The notes beneath the pieces are model-generated. The model was given only the letters and a program-made list of their open reading frames with translations, was not told where the DNA came from and searched no databases. A stretch of DNA of 64,000 bases from Marsupella aquatica (taxonomy: Eukaryota > Plantae > Marchantiophyta): the NCBI GenBank assembly GCA_973895155.1, contig OZ316898.1:8977079-9041078 (forward strand). The letters run 5' to 3'. The position numbers and the translations under genes were made by a program. Positions 9,972-47,600 of the stretch are shown here, one piece after another; positions within the stretch are counted from its first letter, which is position 1; every line of letters starts with the position of its first letter.

Positions 9972-12900
9972 TTAGTGTTTTCCCTTGCCCTTGTGGACCT
10001 TGGGTCCTTTTTTCGGTGCGCCTACTTTCGAATTGGCAGCTTTCGAACCACTGCCACCCGTCCTTTGTTTCCCTTTCTTGAGAACGCTGCTCATACCCTG
10101 GCGCGCAGATGCTTTCTTCGCCTCTCTCCTGTTGAGAAGCTTTGGATCCAAAGGCCAGTACGCATACGGTTCAAATTTTCCTTCCTTTTTCATATCTCCT
10201 CCACCTTTCCCTTTCCGGTTCGCATAGTCCTCCCCAGTGTAAGCCCAACTCTTCGTACCGGTCTTCGCCTTCTTCCTTCCGGCAACCTCCTTCTGTCCAC
10301 GTCCGGTTCCTTTGCTAGATTCCTTCCCTTGACTTCTTCTACTGGCACTACTTTTACCTCCCCTACTTTTCGTGTCATCATCGTCATCATCACTATCATT
10401 CCTTTCACGTTTGCGATTCCTGTCCTTGTTTTCATCGACTATAAGCCGGCCATCCATGTCAAAATCTGGTTCATCATCGGAGTCCACTTGTTTGGGTTTC
10501 CTCAGCGCTGATAGAACTTCACGGGTCTTTTTCACATCCAGCAGGTCCAAAGGTTCATTTTCTTGCATATCCACATCTTCAGGAAGTCGCTTTTTAGACT
10601 TCCGCAACATTTTAGATCTGTATCAATCATTAAGCTCGTCAGATTAACCCTCTTACTCGTGATGCATCAACAGAAATTTGCATCCCGAAGACCAAAATCA
10701 AATACGGCAAGATAATGCACCTGGTCACATTGGATCCTTTTGTCATGGATGACTTGGCCACTGTTGTAGCCCTTGTGCTGCCATAATCATCCTCACTGTC
10801 ATCATCATCTTCAAGATCATCTGAAAAGATGTCTGTGTGGTTCCATGCACTTTTCCTGTTACAGTCACTTAAATTAGTCCATGCAAAGTAAGATCAAACG
10901 TAGAGCTCGTAAATAGAATACTGACAGCTCAAGCTAAAAGTTGCAACAACACTGACATCAAAACTAAGTTGTAGATTGTGTTGGTGATGTCAAAAAGATC
11001 ATCTGAAATCCTTATAAATCAGAGTTTTTTACTGTTCTCAATAACTTCAAATATCATGGCGTATCTTAAATAATTTCACACTTGTTTCTCTTTACTCGAT
11101 GTCTTTGTTCTTCAGTTCTTCAAATCAATTAGTTTTCGGGGTCTTTCACCTTTACTAGCTGGTGAGGGATGACTCCATTCACACTTGTTAGAACGCAATT
11201 TCTCGTTTCATGGCCGGCATTTTAAAAGAGACTCCTATCAAAGAATGAGGCAAGCATCCTTACCTTGCAGTTGAGGCCCGCGACTTCACCGACTTTGTGT
11301 CATCATCAGTGTAATCCTTTTTCTTTTTCTCTGCTTGCTCTTTTTTCTGCAGTGAAAAACAGATTCGGCATGAGAGGATAATTCTTACCCTTTTTCAAAA
11401 GGTTGAGAACAAGCAGACATCTTTTCCTCGAATAAAAGTTTTATCCCTGCAAGAAAATTACCTTACGAATGTTGGTGAGAAGCTTCATATGCTCTGGTGG
11501 CATCACAGCAGCAACAGCGTCCATTCCACATCTCCGAACCATCCTCTCAATAATTTCTCTAACCTGTTACAAAACCAGGTCAAAGTTAGATTGTCACGCA
11601 TGTTGTAGCATTAATGACCGGGACCAAATGGTGCAATATTTCAATACAAGGTCTTCTGTCGTTATGAAAAGCTTGACTATGAGGTTTAGTGAAGATGGTT
11701 GGAGACAACTCAGTAGATGCATTCCTTGTATTAAAGACAAAGGACACACATGTTAGGAGGAGCAGAGAAGCCAATTTTCAGCATAAGACAGAAAATTCAG
11801 ACGAGCGAAGAAGGCTGCCCCCTCACCAAGAACGGCACCAAACCCTTGCCTCCAGGGAAAAGAAAAGAAGGGTTAATGAATGACACGACATTTCTCGCAC
11901 CTTTGCTTTAAAGCGGTTCTTTGAATCATCAGTCCATAGCATCAACCCTTGAACCATGCTTGGTAAATGCTTCTCCAAGTCTACAGCTGGTAAACGAGCT
12001 ATCACAACCTTAACCAGGCCCAGCACAGACTGAACACCACATGTGACAGCATTCGATTAGCACGTGAAGGTTAATATAGACTGCACGCATCCTACTAGAG
12101 TTAAGCACTACGAATCGATCCAGACCTCCAAAGATAACGGATCTGATACTAAAATCAAACTTCTCAGGCTACGTACAACCTGCTTGATCGCAGAATATGA
12201 AGGATCCACACAAGACACGATATATCAACTGCAGTATCGAAAATTTACGTCTTTAGCACGACCTACAGCGCTGAGACATACCTTAATGATCTCGCGATTC
12301 TTGCTCCGGAGCAATAGCAAAGCTGAAGGCAGTAGGTCAGGAACGGTGTGGCACAGGGTAGCTGCAAACTCGTATATAAGCCGAGCGAGAGATGCCACAG
12401 CTGCGCTGACCATTTGAGGAGTGGTCCCTGCGAGACAACCAAGTATCTGCCATCCACAACCCCAACAAGCTCTATTACTGTGTCCGTATCACATCATACT
12501 GACCAAGCCTTACACAGCACAATAATTACTGAAGTGACACAGGAAACAGCTATATCTCAAGGCCACTAAACATCATGACTCACCATATTGTAGTATCGCA
12601 TCAAATTGGTGTGGGAGTTATCCGTGTCAAGTTCCTCCACAGAATGAGCAATTGTAATCAATAAGTCGTATGCTGCATTCCTTGCTTTCTTGTTTGACTG
12701 CAGCAATCATCAATCTCGCAGAGTGTCAATATGACATAAACTCCCTAGGTCTCCCACCTTAAATGAAGTGACCATGTAAGTATCCGATGGCATTTAAAGC
12801 ATGTCCATGGAGACGATCTAATCGAGACTTTGCATGAACAACCTTAACGTGCCAGACTTACTTCTTTGGTAGCCAAGATTATCTCGCTAATTAGAGTGGC

Positions 12901-28384: not shown

Positions 28385-29209
28385 TGTGCCTCACACGTCC
28401 CCACCCATGTAGAGGTAAATAGTAGCCACTTTGGCTAATGTTTAAAAACAAGTAAAAATGGCTGGTGGAGAGGGAAAAGGCCAGGTGAGAGAGAGGAGTA
28501 AAGTTGGATAATGTTTCAAAAAACCAAAAGAAAAAAACTGGTGGGGAGAGAAAAGGCCAGGTCAGAGAGAGGAGTAAAGTTGCCAAGGAAACCCCAAGAG
28601 GAGTAAAAATGGCAATGGAACCAACCCCAATGGAACGAACCCCACCCCAATGGAACCAACCCCTAGCCTGTCGAGGCGCCTCACACTTCCCCACCCAACC
28701 CAACAGTTGTTAGGGCTCTTCTGGTGTCTGGTTTGGAGTACCAAAATAACTGGTGGAGAGGGAAAAGGCCAGGTGAGACAGAGGAGTAAAGTTGCCAAGG
28801 AAACCCCGGGAGGAGTAAAAATGGCAATGGAACCAACCCCAATGGAACGAACCCCACCCCAATGGAACCAACCCCGAGCCTCTCGAGGCGCCTCACACTT
28901 CCCCACCGAACCCAACAGTTGTTAGGGCTCTTCTGGTGTCCGGTGTCTCTGGTGTCTCTGGTGTCTGGTTTGGAGTACCAAAATAACTGGTGGAGAGGGA
29001 AAAGGCCAGGTGAGACAGAGGAGTAAAGTTGCCAAGGAAACCCCAGGAGGAGTAAAAATGGCAATGGAACCAACCCCCAATGGAACCAATCTACCCCAAT
29101 GGAACCAACCCCGACCCTCTCGAGGCGCCTCACACGTCCCCACCAAACCCAACAGTTGTTAGGGCTCTTCTGGTGTCTCTGGTGTCTCTGGTGTCTGGTT
29201 TGGAGTACC
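28385..29209. repeat. ~210-240-bp tandem repeat array (3 full units plus partials) abutting the VDAC promoter
   Basis: Units start ACTGGTGG(A/G)GAG near 28537, 28749 and 28988, with internal AATGGAAC(C/G)AACCCC and GGTGTCTCT subrepeats. The ORFs reported here are repeat artefacts. Confidence 0.9.
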
Positions 29210-33369: not shown

Positions 33370-34086
33370 GGATTGTGCTGAAGAAAACATTGTTAGGTTA
33401 AATTGCCTTTTAAAGTCTCAAGTGTTCCCACTAGGCTTTTCTTCCACAGTTCTGACATTCTTCGATGGGGACGAACGAGGAGGTATGTCCTGAGGAAAAC
33501 ATTGCTAGGCTAATTACCTCTTGAAGTTCTAAGTATTCCCCCTAGGTTTGTGAGTCTATAGCTCTGAAATCCTTCGATGGGGAGGAATGAGGAGGAGGTA
33601 TGTCCTGAGGAAAACATTGCTAGGTTAATTACCTCTTGAAGTTCTAAGTATTCCCCCTAGGTTTGTGAGTCTATAGCTCTGAAATCCTTCGCTGGGGAGG
33701 AATGAGGAGGAGGTATGTCCTGAGGAAAACATTGCTAGATTAATTGCCTCTTGAAGTTCTAAGTATTCCTCCTAGGCTTGTGCGTCTATAGCTCTGAAAT
33801 CCTTCGATGGGGAGGAATGAGGAGGAGGTATGTCCTGAGGAAAACATTGCTAGGTTAATTGCCTCTTGAAGTTCTAAGTATTCCTCCTAGGCTTGTGCGT
33901 CTATAGCTCTGAAATCCTTCGATGGGGAGGAATGAGGAGGTATCTTGCAGTGCAGATAATAGTCCCAGTTCAGCTGTGGCCAGTCTCCGATCGTTTCACC
34001 CATCAACGGAATGAGGAGGTATCTTGCAGTGCAGATAATAGTCCCAGTTCAGCTGTGGCCAGTCTCCGATCGTTTCACCCATCAAC
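33370..34086. repeat. 115-bp tandem array (4 units plus a degenerate one) followed by a 79-bp exact duplication
   Basis: AGGTATGTCCTGAGGAAAACATTGCTAG at 33481, 33596, 33711 and 33826. GGAATGAGGAGGTATCTTGCAG...CCCATCAAC at 33929-34007 and 34008-34086. Confidence 0.92.
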
Positions 34087-36671: not shown

Positions 36672-39600
36672 TCAGATTATCCGATGTCTCTTGCCTGGCT
36701 GTCCCTGGTAGCTGTCCCATGTTCCTTGCAACATCTGTTGCCTACCGGCAGACACCGGCAGCGACACATTGTCGTTGTGGGGACTGAAGCTCTGCAAAAA
36801 CAGGACAAGTAAGGCCCTGTGCAGGTTTTCATGGGGTGGACAACAAACATAGAACAAATTGCGATGAACATCATAGAGGTGAAACAAGAGCGCTCCGTAA
36901 TGTTCACATTTGGTAGTTCCGGTATCCGGCTCAAAAGCTCAAGGAAAGAAGCGCACAATGAAAGTACTAGTTTCCTTATCCTATAGTTCTACTGACGACG
37001 AGACGCCAAGTTCTTTAGACACTGTACCTGAGGGTTGGTGAACGCCGATTGGTTTACCAGAGTTTCGCCCTTCATTTGGGTTTGAAAGTCATTTTCATAG
37101 GCCTCCTGGAGAAGCTTCACCCTGGGAAAAGAGTTTAAACTAGTCATAAAACAATCTGTAGCGATTTGATCAAGAATTAGTCCGATAGCTCGTCAGCACA
37201 TGGTTTCCGGAAAAAGAGAAAATAGGATCCAATCTGGTATCCATGCAGGCAAACGCAGTGTTCATGATTCTTTCAAAGTCGGTTGCTCATGTTGCTTCGC
37301 AACCCTGCACTGCTCATGATCAATTTTTCACATGTTAATCCAGTCAAGAGAGGGAAACATTTACTCTTCGATCTTCTGTTCGAGGCTCTGCAAGGCTCTT
37401 TGCTGATCCTTGAGGAGATTGCCCAACTTCTGCTCCTGGCCTGACGTCCATAACGGAGCAACTATTGAGAAAAGTTCTCAATAACTTGAAGATAACTAAT
37501 TAACTACGTCAACGCTTTGAAGATACCAGGGTTGAATCTAGCGTGTTGCCATCCTATCGTGGTTTTCGTATCCGAAGAGAACCAAAATGGCTGTGGGATT
37601 CTGCAGTAGAAGAGGGCAAGTCAAAATGCTGTGCCCGTCGAGAAGTTTTGAAATTTGAAGGCCTCTCCGATGAAATGAAACGAAGTAGCTTGGCTTAGGA
37701 CGGCATCATTATGGTTTCTTCAAATTGCGTGGGCATGCCAAAAAATTAGGATATAGAATGAGTCGCAGTTGGTTCGTACTCAGAAGAAGAGGTAACTCTT
37801 GCTGGAGTGTGACAATTCCGTCTTCCAAATTTCTCTTCTCTTCGCTGAACAAGTCAAAATCTTCTTCCAGCCTACAGATGTTAGAGATCATGTTAGTTCA
37901 AATGGCTCACAGCCTTTCAGAGACCTATTTTGTTCAAAAGCTTTCATCAAGACTCAAAGAGCTTACCGAGAAATTTCCTGACATCCTTGCACATTGGCCA
38001 GGGCATCATTTAGACCATCTATCCTTCGTAACAGGTGTTTCTTCTGTGAATTTTCGGCGTTCATTTCACTCTGCAATTCTGTTCCACATATGAGTCAATA
38101 TATAGCGAATGACAAATCTCTGCATGATAACTTCTCCGACCTCCGATTATCAGTCAGGATATTTTCTTTTAGGACCATCACGTTTAACGTTTTTGAATGC
38201 CTGCTACACTTCATTTGATTTCTCTTCAAGCAATTCTTCGGATCATCGAATTATGATTGCGCCAGTTCGTTTGATTTCTCTAAGGGAATTGAAGCTACCT
38301 TGAAGCATCGATCGTACCTGCATTGACATGTTGCAATTGTCGGAATCGTTCCATCTTATTTCGAGAGAGTGCCTGCTGATCAGCAAATTGAACAGATTTG
38401 ATGTCCCTCTTGGGAGTTTCACCCTCAGAAAGATGGGTAGATTTTCGTAACGTTAGAGCAAAGTCATTCACTGCTCCTTGGCCCATTTCTCGTTCCTGTT
38501 GGAATGATTTGCATGAGGCAATAAAAGCCTGCCTTCAAGCATGTTAGGTTAGTTAGTCAGACAAATAAATTGATTTCTTCTCCACTTAGATCCAATGTCC
38601 GTCCAACGCTTAATCCTCTTGTTAGCGGTAAGATCAGTGGGGATCAGTGGACAGATGGTTCAAGTTTTAGTCTATTCTAGAATGTGCACGGCCAGTGAGT
38701 CTCCAAAAGTACTAGTAGAGCTGCAAAATGATTTGCACAATTCATGCAAATGTGTGTTCCTCAACACGGGGCTTTGAACTATTTCGAATCATCTGTAAAG
38801 AAGGCTATGAATATCTTTCTCCATCTTCTTACTGAAGACGACGTAGCATTACTGGCGAAGATTTTGCATAATTATGGTTATACGTGTCCTTGTTGGCAGA
38901 CTCTTCATCAATATCTGAAGTACAAGCTGACGAGCTGCTGATGCTCGGAGGTGCCAATGGCCAACCAACCTATAACAGCCATTTTGAAAACAAACCAAAA
39001 GGCGTTCTCGGGATCGAAAACGCAGGCTCAACCAAACCAGTGGATTTCCATGTTAAGCAGGAAATCTCACGAGTAGTACGCACGCAGTGAAATCGAGGCC
39101 TGACATCAGTCAATCACTTCACAACTGTGCCGATCGTCAGCAGTTCGGTATCTCATGAAATTTAGAGTATATCACCTGTAACAGCCATTCGCTATCCGGT
39201 TCTCTCAAGAGATAGTCGAAGGCGGATACGGTCACGTGAGGAGAACATCTAAGTCTGATGAAGAGCCTTCAGTATCGCAAACAGCTTAGAGGATTGTCCA
39301 TCCACATAGTACTAAGTCAGGAAGGCTTCGATGCTCGCTGTCATAGCTAGTTGGATATTTATGAACATTGCGGAGAAAAGACTTTCGGCCATACCTGTCG
39401 TTCTCTATCTCGAAGCAAAAATCAGACTTCTGATTTTCGACAAGTCGGAGCTTCTCTTCTAGTTGTGCGAAATTCTCCTTCGCCGCATCTGTCAGTTGCA
39501 AGATCGGAACCATTATTTTCAATATCTAAATGATGCTGTACGTAGAGCGAAAACATTTCATTCCATTGGACCGTGCCTAAGTCAAATGAAAGCGCTTCCT

Positions 39601-41778
39601 GCAGGGGCTCCTTGAACACACTGCGGACACAGACTACCACTAATTTCAAAGTGATATGCAGTCAACTTAGAATATATTGTCACCATGTATCAAGCACAGC
39701 AAAAAAGGAGTGCTGGCTATCAATCCAGCTGCTCACTGGACTTGAACTCCGTATAACTTTTCATCAAGAAGAAAGTTTGGTTCAATCACTTTCTATTGCC
39801 TGCTTGCGTTCAAGAAAAACTACCATGAGCAACTCATGCTATTACTTGGCAATGATTTGATTCTTTCAATTGAGATGACTGTGTAACGCAGGAATGGAGG
39901 AAGTCTGAAACCCCTTTCGCTTTTAGAGTATCATCCTCGTGTCCAAAAGGCAACAGAGGAAGCCTGAAACCCTTCGCTTTTAGAGTATCGTCCTTGTGTC
40001 CTGAAGGCAGTTATAGAAAGGAAGGCTCCCGGCGGATGTTATTGCTTTCTTGTCTACAATTGGGAAAGGAAAGGAAAAAAAAGGTAGTCTTGTCACTCGG
40101 GAGCTTCCGTTGCCGGGACTCGAACCCGGGTCGCTCGGGTGAGAGCCGAGTATCCTAACCATCTAGACTACAACGGAGATGTCGTATTTGCGGCAAAAGA
40201 GCAACTTAACAATTTTTCATTAATGGCGGGAGTGAGGGTAACGACGTAGGAAATGGATCGGAGTGCACGATTGGAAAGTCATGTTGATTGGTAAGAGTTT
40301 CAAGTTTGAGAACTGAAATCGTTACCGAGACAACACTGAAATTGATAGCGCCATGCTCCCCGTATCACTAAGAGACATCCGAAAACTTTACAACAAGGTG
40401 ACAACACCAAACTGCAGATTAAATAGTCCAATGCAATTGCCATTGCTGTGCCCAGGAAAAATTCCTTCTCCAGAGTACCAGAAGTTCTTCTCATCGACGG
40501 ACAACGAAAGAGTTTTTACCAGTCACTGCCAGCAGATCCGACTTTTGATTTTCCCTTCGAATTAGGATCTGCTTCCATTTCTCGGCATAAGTTCGTGCTG
40601 CGTGCTCCTTCTCCGCGCTTTGCACAATTGCTAACTCGACTGCTCTTGTGTTCCTTATTATCGCTTCTATCTCCTCGTTGATCTGTTACAAACCAGGTGC
40701 AAGAAATCAGTGTCTCCGAAGGTGGGAAAAAACACATGTAGCTTTGATGAGCGCGTTATTGAAATTGGAGAAGGATCAAACAGGATGTCGTTGGCGTTCA
40801 TTGCGCGACTTCGAAGCTGCGAGAATGAATTCTTCTTGGACAAGTAATTACCATACAGAGTTCGAGCTTAATCTGAAAAGCTTCAACCATGCAAACGAAA
40901 AACCTTTAGAGTTTATACAAAATAATAAGATCTCACCATGAATGGATCTTTCTCCCGAGTGATAAACAACTGAGAGTTATGAGATTCCGACTGAGTTAAA
41001 TGGTGTCACCAAAAACTTCAAAATCACTCTGGCGTGCTACTCTTCTCGAACGCCGCTTTAATGTAGGTTTTATGAGATCTTGCTTCTCTCGATCATGATA
41101 CCTCAGGTAATGCCACGATCTGAACCTTCGTACATGGTTATCTTTGTACTCTAGAAGTCCTAAACCAAGCCGGCATTAATAAGCAACCTGTTGCACCAGT
41201 AAGTTGAAGTGCTGCGCGCCAGGAATGGCTAATTTTCGAGTGTTAACGAGTTTGAAAACAAGAAGAAGAAAAAAGGAACGTGACTGTTCTATACCTGATC
41301 GATGTTATGCTTGCAATCGGAAATATGCTGCAAGAACGATTGACCTTTTGCCCTAGTTGCACTACTGCCAGGAATGGCTTTAATTTCCAAGTGCGAACGA
41401 GTTCCAAAACAGGAAGAAGAAAAAAAATCATGACTGTACCGTACCGGATCGATATAATGCTTGAGGTTGAAATTTTGCTGCAAGAACGAACGACCTGTTG
41501 CACTAGTTGCACTGCTTCCAGGAATGGCTTTAATTTTGGAGTGCGAACGAGTTGCAAAGGAAGAAAAAATGGAACATGACTGTTCTGTACCTGTTCGACA
41601 TTATGCTTGAGGTCGAAATTTTGCTACAAGAACGAATGACCTGTTGCACTAGTTGCTCTCTTGCCACGCGAGGAATGGCTTTAAATTCTCAAGTGCGAAC
41701 GAGTTCCAAAAACAGGAAGCAAAATGGAACATGACTGTAATGTACCTGATCGACATTATGCTTGAGATCGGATATTTG
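36672..41778 (-). CDS. Multi-exon coiled-coil protein gene (unknown family; 5' end unresolved)
   Basis: Phase-compatible GT-AG exons: 33-nt micro-exon(s) 41778-41746 etc., 40872-40852 (IKLELCM), 40682-40520, 39488-39395, an uncertain linker (38934-38884 plus ~38720-38690, or 39248-39176), 38372-38318, 38078-37967, 37871-37780, 37461-37365, 37121-37028, 36791-36672 (stop). The joined peptide QISDLKHNVDQIKLELCMINEEIEAII... keeps a 3-4 heptad across junctions. Confidence 0.7.
40105..40177 (-). tRNA. tRNA-Glu (anticodon CUC), plant cytosolic type
   Basis: TCCGTTGTAGTCTAGATGGTTAGGATACTCGGCTCTCACCCGAGCGACCCGGGTTCGAGTCCCGGCAACGGAA forms a full cloverleaf with A and B boxes. T8 Pol III terminator about 22 nt downstream (40075-40082). 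Confidence 0.97.
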
Positions 41779-42070
41779 CTGCAAGAATGAGCGGCTGTGC
41801 GAATCCATTATAATGCACAATAATAGGAGCGCGAATTTTCTACTCTCCTTGGTTTTTCTTCCTTCAGCAAGACTAGAGTTGTAGGTAATGTGGCCAAATC
41901 AGGGTGACTCCAGGTCGGAAATTTGCCGCAAGAACGAACGGCTGTGCGAATCCATAGTAATGCAGAATAATAGGAGCGAGCATTTCTTACTCTTGGTTTT
42001 TCTTCCTTCAGCTAGACTAGAGTTCTTGGTAATGTGGCCAAACCAGGGGGACTGCAGGTGCGGATCAGGG
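41215..42070. repeat. ~150-bp tandem array (4 units, each an intron plus 33-nt exon cassette) followed by two ~145-bp units
   Basis: AGGAATGGCT at ~41221, 41370, 41520 and 41671. Second-type units GGCTGTGCGAATCCAT... at ~41792 and ~41940. Confidence 0.9.
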
Positions 42071-42609
42071 GTGAGTTGAGAGTAGTCTCTCAGTTGAACT
42101 ACTCAGGATTCGAGCAGGGGCTGAAACTGACAGAAGGGCTTCGGGATGTGCTTTGCTCTAAGTCGCCTGCAGTTCTGCTGGAGGAGAATGGGATCACTTT
42201 GAGTTCACAGCACAACACTGCCCCTCAACCGAAGTTCCATAAATCAATCAATCAACTGAAGTTCCATGAATCAATCAATCAACTGAAGTTCTATGAATCA
42301 ATCAAAGTAGAGGATAAAGGAGGTCTGGTGTGGGGTTACTAGCCCTAAACCCTCTCCACAAAGTGAAGAAAAACAGATTATGGGAATAACAAATGCCTCC
42401 TATGGGAATAGCAAATGCCTCCCTAAAATGTTTACATGCAGGTAACCTGCTTTCCGGACAGAAATACTGGAGGTGCACAAATTTAAGGTTAATTTTGGGG
42501 GGGCCTTAACAGAAGTGACCATATTTCTTTTTCACTTTGTTCTGTAATTTTAAGTTGCTTGTTTCTTGGGAGCTGTGGTCATCTTTCATTTCACATTAGT
42601 TTTAATCTA

Positions 42610-43185
42610 CCTGTCCCTATAAAAGCCCCATTCCATGCCTCATTACTTCTCATTCCTGCCTGTCCCTGTAAAAGCCCCATTCCATACCTCACTACTTCTC
42701 ACTCCTGCCTGTCCCTATAAAAGCCTCACTCCATGTCTCACTACTCCACATTTCTCTCCTGTGGTGAACAGTGTACTCACCATAAAAGGTGGAGCACTCA
42801 CTACCTTTTGTGGAGCTCAAGTCCATTCCTGTAAAAATGAAACTCTGCACTTTATAATGAGTGCAGAGCTACAGGTAACCCTAACTCTTTATAGGTGTAC
42901 TTGTGATTTCAAAGGTTACTTGTTTCTTGGGCTTAACACCGCTGCTTATTTTTCATTCTACCTTGTTCTTGAAGGTATAATTCTACTGTCCCCATGATTT
43001 CTGAAAGTTATTTGTTTTTTGGGCTTAACAGTGATTATCTTTCATTTCCCCTTGTTCTTTGACATATAATTTTAATGTCCCCAGGATTCCTTAAGGTTAC
43101 TTGGTTTTTGGGTTTAACAGCAGTGATAATCTTTCATTTCAATTTGTTCTTTAACATATAATTCCACTGTCCCCATGATTTCTGG
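42610..43185. repeat. Short tandem repeats (49-bp x3; ~90-bp x3)
   Basis: CCTGTCCCT(A/G)TAAAAGCC at 42610, 42659 and 42708. GTTA(C/T)TTG..TT.TTGGG.TTAACA at ~42915, 43007 and 43097. Confidence 0.75.
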
Positions 43186-44692: not shown

Positions 44693-47600
44693 TTAGTGAG
44701 AATTGGTAGAATTGATAGAACATATGAATTGGTAGAACTTGTATCCAGAGGCATCAGCAATTATGTTCCGCAACCCTCCAATGGTGGCAATGATAGCAAG
44801 TAGTGCCCCTATGACGATTAGAAACTGCACAGATTCACGCAACCCTTTAGAATTCTGAACGAAATAGAAAACCTGCACAAATCTACTTGATGAAGGGAAA
44901 CCCTCAGTATTGACATTGTAATGTGACTTTTTGTTAGAGAGAACAGGAGGCTGAATTAGCCGGATTTCTCAAGTACCACTTACCCAATTTAAGAACCAAG
45001 AAATACTGTAAACCGGTGGCTTCTTAATAGCGAGCCATATAATGCATGGTAACTGCGCACAACAGTTCAAGACAGTCAGTAAAACCCGTTTTCAGGCATG
45101 ATTTCCATATAGACAGAAGTTAGACATGACATTAACCTTTCCTTCAGGGATCAAATAAAAAGCACACAAACTATATCCAGAAACCAGTACGGCCAATGAA
45201 TTGGAATTGCAAGAAAAGTTGCTCATCAACACTTACAAAATATGTTGTAGGAGCAAAAGCAAAGCCTCCCAAAAGTCCGAGTAGATCGTGGAAGAAAGGA
45301 AACGTACAAGCTATAAACGCCGTGAACACTGAAAAACAAACACATACATGAGGAACCAGAAACTTCCTATAATTTTGTTTTGAGAAAGCAAACTCTGCTG
45401 TCCGCAAACCAAGATATAGAACACAAGTGATCCAACGACTAAAGCTCAGCAAGCATCAAAATTGACAAAGAAGCTTTCAATTACTTACGAACATAAGAAC
45501 TTCGAGTCACGACTCGTAACATTGAAAGAGGTCCCGGTCTTGGGAAGCGAAACTTCTTCACCAAAATAGTCTCCATCATATCGAACACAGGCATTGCATA
45601 CACCTGCATGCAACATTCACGGAATTCCCCAGGTCCAGAATCAGCAGACAACTTGCGAGTTTGTTAAGATCGCCCTAGTTCTCAATCAAACACAACATGT
45701 GGGGTTATCAGAGGTGGACAGATTTTCACTGTTAATACAAATGAACTCGCTGACTCTCCGAAATTCAACATTTATTCTAGAGTGTCGGCCAAGAGCGAGC
45801 CACATGTACCTGGTAACTCCCTGTAACATGAATAACCACCATCAGATTTGCAGCGGCGATTAGCCCCATTGGTGTACCCAATTGAAGCAGAATATTTCCA
45901 CTGCCTGGATTTCCTTTGCTTGATTTCCCCAAAGTCTGCGAGAGTGAGTTTCCAAATGCCCAGTAACCAGCGAATGCCACCGGGAAGTAGCAGAATGCAA
46001 CGAGGATGTACGCTACCACTACACCCCGCCACATTAGAACTTTGGACGGTTTCTTTTGGGTAGATGGAAGCGTGGCCTGAATCTCGAGCACCACATTGTG
46101 ACCTGCATAAGCAAAAGCTACAGTTCCTAGCGCGTTGCACGCTCCAAAAACTAGGTCTAGAGTTGAAGTGTCGGGAAGATGGTAGTCGTCGTACCGAACC
46201 GGAGTCGGGGACAGGGACGGTGTCTGAAGATCGCGATTTGAATGATTCGCATTGCCCCGGTGAATAGAGTCAGCCCAAGCGATTGTGCAATAGCTACACA
46301 CCGAGCAACACATATTACATTTTGTTTCGAGGAAGACACTTGGTCAAGTCACATCGAAATGTCGTCCTTCACGGGACAATTATCTTATTTGCAGTTGTGC
46401 ATAGAGTCTTTGTGGCTGAGAAAGCTTATCTTCGTTTAAAGAAACTGAAATTCTCATTTTGGGATCTCAATGTCAAGAATAAATGAAACTGAATTTCTCA
46501 TTCTGGGATCTCAATGTCAAGAATAAATGAAACTGAATTTCTCATTCTGGGATCTCAATGTCAAGAAACCAATTGTTCGGCCTTGTATAGATTTTGTTGG
46601 GCTCATGAGCAACACCAGTAGGTTCAGATGAACTACTACCCTGGCCATAGAGACTGGTAAATCTTTGCAGTAGTCAATGCTGATGTTTAGCACACAAGGA
46701 CAACAACACCTCAAGGACACAAAGTAATCAACGAAACAACGAAGGCTAGTTACCAGAGGGACATGACAGAAGCGGCCATGGAGATGCTTGCAATAGAGTT
46801 AAAATTCCCGAGCTGGGCAAGGAAAAACTGCGGCGCGGCAAAGATGACCATGAATGCCGTTCTCCCAACTCCTTTACAGCATTGGTCTCCCGGGTCCACT
46901 GCAGGCAAGTGGGAACACGCGAGCAGCTTGTAGAACTGCCACAGAGACTGTCCACCTGCGACCATGTACACGATGTCCCCCCCAACTTCCACGACGAGCT
47001 GTTGTGGCACTACAATCCACAGCCCCAGTTTCTCCCCAAAAGCCTGCTGCCCAAGCTCGTGGTACCGATCAAACCTTTTTCCAGGCACCATCTCGTGCAT
47101 CTGTATCATTTGCCATAATGTGTACAGGGTGATTACCCACGACAACACCAGGACGACTGTTCCAGCGCCCCTATATACAGACACTCAATGTACAACAAAA
47201 TGTCAGCTTGCATTGACTAGGTGGACCGAGGATTTTCCAATTTTTATTCAGAACTCTTCCCATCTCTAACAAAGGCACAGATCTAGTCACTCACCAGCCA
47301 AGATATGCCATGGTCGTTGGAAGGCCCAGCACACCGGCTCCCACCATGGCAGTGACATTGTGGTAGGTTGAATACCACCATTTGCCGTTCCGGGATCCAA
47401 TGACAGGCAGCCTGTCGTCATCTGGGTCGTACTCAACCGAATCGTCTGTATCCTGCCCAAGTCCACATTGAAGAGCAGAATCTCAGCATCGGAAATTCGC
47501 AAATCCTCTGCAAATCTTTACTGTGAGTTCACGTTATCTCCACCTTGACTCTCAATTGCCCAAGTCCAAGTTTCCGGTAGAATTTGACATCATATTTCAG

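Follow-up and report, generated by a model that had tools for sequence, protein, structure and literature searches.

A tandem array with a period of about 150 bp, located in the window (the whole 64-kb stretch of liverwort DNA considered here) on the minus strand, probably represents a lineage-specific tandem duplication of the junction between exon 1 and intron 1 of a single host gene. The copies in the intron appear to form a neutral minisatellite that makes three in-frame pseudo-exons, and the array is at most a candidate nascent alternative exon. The locus is mostly a case for correction, in that an apparently designed array of micro-exons resolves into one duplication history and an ordinary gene model (Table 1).

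The minus strand was read directly over 41180-42060. Positions 41219-41787 were reported by Tandem Repeats Finder as a single tandem array (period 150, 3.8 copies, 80% matches, 4% indels, score 638), in which the repeat finder placed four copies in register at spacings of 150, 146 and 155. Four minus-strand segments of 33 nt, each preceded by TTCTTG(C/T)AG and followed by GTA, read QISDLKHNVDQ, QNFDLKHNVEQ, QNFNLKHYIDP and HISDCKHNIDQ in frame 0 of copies 1-4, and are separated by spacers of 122, 113 and 117 nt. An earlier note on this DNA had described these four as open, phase-0 segments between AG and GT with indel-bearing spacers of 113-122 nt, and had understood the apparent satellite as an exon-plus-intron cassette repeated within a minus-strand coiled-coil gene, which goes on at 40682-40520. 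All four segments are present where it placed them, the spacers have the lengths and indels described, and we agree on the cassette. The spacer indels occur mostly in T-rich or homopolymer tracts, and the 33-nt part contains no such tracts. Frame 1 is likewise open in all four copies, so that the open frame 0 says little. Moreover, the AG, the GT, the length and the frame of the copies were inherited from one parent by duplication and hence do not amount to four independent coincidences.

The window is nuclear DNA of a plant, and its genes are split. The nature of the first copy follows from the gene to which it belongs. An exhaustive HMMER search with the 54-residue translation of exon 2 (40682-40521) recovered exactly one protein relative, P0001 (341 aa), which is 87% identical over the exon and is aligned at its residues 22-75. 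This protein, a gene prediction from the leafy liverwort Calypogeia fissa, has the accession CAM6087182.1 and the title ‘unnamed protein product’. Its first 21 residues, MDSHGRSFLQQIFDLKHSIDQ, match window positions 41808-41746, which read MDSHSRSFLQQISDLKHNVDQ and are followed by GT (tblastn), and ‘micro-exon 1’ (41778-41746) is therefore the last 33 nt of a first coding exon of 63 nt. The supposed TTCTTGCAG acceptor of copy 1 consists of TTC TTG CAG, codons 8-10 (Phe-Leu-Gln) of exon 1, the 5' border of the segment falls within a coding exon that is open over at least 63 nt, and the length of 33 nt is simply the parental distance from the CAG codon to the donor. The ‘acceptor’ is an accident of coding sequence. 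We consequently rejected copy 1 as a micro-exon: the proposal that it is a symmetric micro-exon with an acceptor of its own fails, because it is part of the ATG-bearing exon 1 (41808-41746) and its acceptor is made of Phe-Leu-Gln codons. The term denotes an internal exon of no more than ~51 nt that is spliced at either border in mRNA.

The whole of P0001 could be placed on the minus strand of the window by tblastn, and a junction search gave a complete host gene model of nine exons with all introns GT-AG and 342 codons, in which copy 1 is the sole copy used. The model spans 36672-41808 (-) in the window, where 41808 is the position of the ATG; the corresponding C. fissa locus is L001, 10001-14894. 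All nine exons recur in the C. fissa gene at identical lengths, save that exon 4 differs by a single codon (215 vs 212 nt). Between the two species the amino-acid identity is 81% and dN/dS is 0.23 over the whole CDS, and exon 1 alone gives a dN/dS of 0.13. Judged by these sequence comparisons, the host gene is a real, constrained gene.

Table 1. Positions of the host-gene exons, intron 1 and the repeat units in the window
Feature	Position	Strand	Description	Basis
A-type tandem duplication	41766..42059	-	2 units of ~146 bp, 86% identical	repeat finder, blastn, tblastn 41955-41908
Upstream start-codon copy	41899..41955	-	18-codon ORF (MDSHSRSFLRQISDLESP, then stop)	
Coding exon 1	41746..41808	-	63 nt, ATG at 41808, 21 codons, MDSHSRSFLQQISDLKHNVDQ, donor CAG/GTACAT	tblastn of P0001 residues 1-23, model
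B-type tandem array	41219..41797	-	four units of 146-155 bp	TRF, repeat finder, alignments, blastn of unit
Intron 1	40683..41745	-	1063 nt, holds three extra copies	
Intronic copy 2 (B2)	41591..41623	-	TAG/33 nt/GTACAG, QNFDLKHNVEQ; candidate pseudo-exon	
Intronic copy 3 (B3)	41445..41477	-	CAG/33 nt/GTACGG, QNFNLKHYIDP; candidate pseudo-exon	
Intronic copy 4 (B4)	41295..41327	-	CAG/33 nt/GTATAG, HISDCKHNIDQ; candidate pseudo-exon	
Exon 2	40520..40682	-	163 nt, acceptor phase 0	
Exon 3	39395-39488	-		
Exon 4	38318-38532	-		
Exon 5	37967-38078	-		
Exon 6	37780-37871	-		
Exon 7	37365-37440	-		
Exon 8	37028-37121	-		
Exon 9	36672-36791	-	stop included	

From P0001 as a single sequence, AlphaFold predicts three long helices (residues 3-122, 153-206 and 208-293) together with a disordered tail. 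This prediction backs the label ‘coiled-coil-like’ and makes the exon 1 peptide continuous with the helix of exon 2. In Pfam we found only sub-threshold coiled-coil noise, both for P0001 and for eight open minus-strand segments (seven over host-gene exons and one spanning exon 1), and a PDB sequence search gave no meaningful match. The queries of the searches were individual exons or P0001, and the spliced CDS of the window served for translation and dN/dS. A word search with exon 2 returned no match, the same kind of search with P0001 in 5.8 billion clustered proteins returned only P0001 itself, and a scan of metagenome contigs for the first 26 nt of exon 2, in which a transcript fragment was sought, was also without a match. 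The host gene accordingly has no detectable relatives outside Calypogeia in the collections searched, and its coding sequence suggests a lineage-restricted (orphan) gene that is kept under purifying selection.

The extent of the duplicated unit can be read from the similarity around the 33-nt segments. Copies 2-4 match exon 1 for a further 18 nt on the 5' side of their CAG, corresponding to codons 5-10 (G-R/H/Q-S-F-L-Q), and the B-type unit therefore comprises exon 1 codons 5-21 plus approximately the first 100 nt (97-104) of intron 1. None of copies 2-4 has an in-frame ATG, B3 carries a C at donor position -2 (CCG/GT), and the spacer downstream of B4 continues into ancestral intron sequence. 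A distinct A-type unit, composed of upstream/5'UTR sequence, the ATG and the first ~14 codons, is duplicated on the other side and overlaps the B array at exon 1. The fifth partial copy of the earlier note, with CGG for CAG, does exist at ~41955-41908 and is this upstream A-type copy. Its 18-codon ORF has A at -3 and G at +4 and ends 90 nt 5' of the real ATG; to judge from the sequence, it would be a lineage-specific uORF if it lies inside the transcript.

Comparison with C. fissa suggests that the array is a recent addition. No tandem repeat was found at the orthologous locus L001, and the unit has one match only in that locus (blastn); the C. fissa gene model joins this single copy straight to exon 2. 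Intron 1 measures 614 nt in C. fissa and 1063 nt in the window, and the distance from the copy-4 donor to exon 2 in the window is 612 nt; the intron of the window is thus the ancestral intron plus three inserted units. In agreement with this, the window can be aligned to intron 1 of C. fissa beyond its last repeat unit. The divergence among copies (22% uncorrected, ~0.27 after JC correction) is below that between the species (pS 0.33, dS ~0.43 corrected), which fits a gain of the array in the lineage of the window after the split from C. fissa, the one other species against which conservation of the array was judged. The array has the features of a minisatellite, namely head-to-tail units, a period of 150, flat identity in sliding windows and absence from C. 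fissa. About 18 other minisatellite arrays are found in the 64-kb window, and such duplications are therefore often made in this genome. A dispersed repeat or transposon was also considered as the origin and was rejected, because the unit is confined to its own array (blastn with the B-type unit gave no occurrence elsewhere in the 64-kb window).

Our proposal is that the lineage of this liverwort, a relative of C. fissa, gained three tandem duplicates of a ~150-bp stretch that straddles the border of exon 1 and intron 1. The step itself may have been slippage or unequal exchange between two short, imperfectly matching motifs, intronic GCAACAGG and exonic GCACAGCC. The first copy still serves as the functional end of exon 1 (ATG at 41808, donor at 41746/41745), and the other three lie in intron 1, each with the inherited 5' splice site of the parent. 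In their intronic setting, the inherited codons TTC-TTG-CAG would happen to read as a pyrimidine tract and a CAG acceptor. Most likely, exon 1 is spliced straight to exon 2 in the main mRNA, just as the C. fissa model has it, the copies presumably being skipped; inclusion of one or more of them may occur at a low level or conditionally.

The substitutions in the copies give little sign that their peptide matters. Compared pairwise, the copies are 78.3% identical over the 33-nt part and 77.6% over the spacer; the comparison of exon with spacer that the earlier note had called for hence shows no better conservation of the former; 72 of 129 sliding windows of 33 columns are as conserved as the 33-nt part or more so. 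Read in the claimed frame, the copies give a dN/dS of 0.73 among themselves, and the two other frames give 0.87 and 1.12. When C. fissa is taken as the outgroup, three synonymous private changes and one nonsynonymous fall in the real exon, and copies 2-4 combined have one synonymous and nine nonsynonymous (Gln to Pro, Leu to Cys in two steps and Asn to Tyr among them), a contrast with a one-sided Fisher p = 0.04 that is drawn from few substitutions (14 changes in total). Going by the site counts, neutral change should give ~1 synonymous for every 4-5 nonsynonymous. By identity, dN/dS and private changes, measures of low power here, no purifying selection on the protein sequence of the copies was accordingly detected, and the divergence of copies 2-4 fits neutral drift as far as these very few substitutions allow. 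The fallback offered in the earlier note, recent duplication without selection, is favoured by the identity, dN/dS and private-change results and by the single copy in C. fissa.

A different interpretation of the same copies is that they are nascent alternative cassette exons, with copy 1 constitutive in exon 1 and copies 2-4 optional, singly or together. On sequence grounds we hold this to be possible but rather unlikely. All three intronic copies have kept the AG, the GT, the length of 33 nt and an open frame. In neutral simulations run at the observed per-lineage divergence of 11.9%, AG, GT and open frame were retained in all three in 16% of cases, and in 4-8% when absence of indels in 3 x 33 nt was also demanded; neutral retention of all features at 4-16% speaks for cassette exons and leaves some room for weak selection on copies 2-4. 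Their splice signals are not visibly poorer than those of the host gene and appear on a par with its real sites. For instance, the donors of the copies resemble the GTAC donors present at 4/8 real introns, the 20 nt 5' of the pseudo-acceptors contain 10-12 pyrimidines (8-16 at the real ones), and the spacers, with their 113-122 nt, match real introns in T-richness. Under intron definition, pairing of the exon 1 donor with the first pseudo-acceptor, at a distance of 122 nt, is conceivable. Each copy would add 11 in-frame residues to the N-terminal helix, up to 33 extra, in a region that is predicted as one long helix in the C. fissa orthologue (residues 3-122), and the hydrophobic residues of the unit have a 3-4-4 spacing that can be read directly from the sequence. 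Insertion of the 33-nt copies keeps the frame and brings in no stop, and would therefore escape nonsense-mediated decay. However, the nine-to-one excess of nonsynonymous private changes looks neutral, the spacer is as conserved as the 33-nt part, the 33-nt segments themselves match introns in AT-richness, and C. fissa is without the array. A YTRAY branch motif within 60 nt is moreover present at 0/3 pseudo-acceptors and at 10/16 real introns of both species, and is thus absent from 6/16 real ones as well. The neutral substitution pattern of copies 2-4, set beside the constraint on the exon 1 peptide, argues against constitutive translation of the copies. Combinatorial inclusion of 0-3 extra units is in our view a minority possibility. 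A reading in which the copies in the intron are newly arisen in-frame cassette exons that use the former Phe-Leu-Gln codons as acceptor and enter the mRNA in variable number, so that the helix is lengthened in 11-residue steps, seems to us improbable.

The earlier note had also suggested a choice among four independent symmetric micro-exons, mutually exclusive and giving four sequence variants, to which we attach almost no credence. The equal length and phase of the copies and their homology are indeed those of classic tandem-duplicated exons (PMC9013439), but copy 1 lies in one open exon with the ATG, copies 2-4 lack an in-frame ATG, and the orthologue has no upstream coding exon. As the only start codon is in copy 1, which cannot be skipped without losing it, four-way mutually exclusive splicing is excluded. 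The spacers are also long enough for adjacent copies to be spliced together, so that steric exclusion would fail, and neither purifying selection on the copies nor more than a single copy in C. fissa was found. It is likewise very improbable, from what the sequence holds, that the array acts as a regulatory decoy, in which extra 5' splice sites, pseudo-acceptors and the duplicated upstream start codon would lower or tune expression, possibly through unproductive pairing of splice sites, intron retention or uORF translation. Three more donors of consensus-like sequence at distances of up to 450 nt from the real donor, a stop that is met after 18 codons when exon 1 is read through into intron 1, and the good start context of the 18-codon upstream ORF would suit such a function; against it, there is no sign of selection for the arrangement and minisatellites are common throughout the window. 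A neutral intronic minisatellite that carries pseudo-exons remains the reading we prefer.

Tandem exon duplication is an established source of alternative, often mutually exclusive, exons, as reviewed and surveyed by Ivanov and Pervouchine 2022 (PMC9013439). The present array resembles such cases in having homologous exon-derived segments of the same length and phase within one gene, each with AG and GT, and in offering raw material for alternative inclusion. The subject was reportedly treated earlier by Kondrashov and Koonin and by Letunic et al. The array differs in that what was duplicated is not a whole internal exon but the 3' portion of the first coding exon together with the start of an intron, in that the acceptor is former coding sequence and copy 1 has the start codon, and in that the copies show no purifying selection and are absent from C. 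fissa. A mutually exclusive cluster would consist of two or more adjacent homologous internal exons, with one copy per mature transcript, and would be expected to persist in relatives; here length and phase are equal, but copy 1 is in the first coding exon, and in C. fissa, the only relative compared, the array is lacking.

With intronic minisatellites of the VNTR type the array shares head-to-tail ~150-bp units of ~80% identity, a lineage-specific occurrence, even substitution along the unit, indels in T-rich tracts, and its place as one of ~18 in the window. It departs from them in that the unit includes a coding segment and a 5' splice site, and each copy is a potential in-frame pseudo-exon. 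The spliceosome normally passes over pseudo-exons and decoy splice sites in introns. The copies are like these in being intronic segments with plausible 3' and 5' sites, and unlike them in that their origin is known (the end of a real exon was duplicated) and in that they are in frame and free of stops. The micro-exon genes of schistosomes encode secreted proteins and contain many symmetric exons of 6-36 nt, spliced combinatorially with cDNA support. A short length in multiples of three, which permits in-frame inclusion or skipping, is common to both; however, those genes mostly have many different micro-exons, and here an ordinary nine-exon gene has three candidate intronic copies.

If inclusion of the copies is true, the locus would offer a clean and datable case in which duplication of an exon-intron junction created in-frame alternative exons in a plant with short introns, and under the cassette reading new alternative exons would have been caught arising in a bryophyte. 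Otherwise, the array is just a further minisatellite in a liverwort genome that is rich in repeats and has many of them.

Several other features of the window were recorded around the host gene. The density of minisatellites is unusually high, with about 18 distinct arrays of periods 21-237 bp in 64 kb (for instance at 28530-29195, 33374-33940, 42225-42305, 42610-42752 and 42912-43184); four arrays are found within 1.2 kb directly upstream of the host gene, and one (57 bp x 1.9) is in its intron 2. Open reading frames at ~45000-47200 (-), such as 46750-47184 and 45777-46313, resemble what we take to be exons of a plant lysine-histidine-transporter / AAAP amino-acid transporter. Rfam and tRNA scans gave nothing besides a tRNA-Glu(CUC) within intron 2 of the host gene, in the same orientation, at window 40105-40177 (-) (Rfam 63.9 bits; ARAGORN). 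The same tRNA-Glu sequence is present in the orthologous C. fissa intron (L001, about 11240-11312, +), and the nested arrangement is hence conserved between both species.
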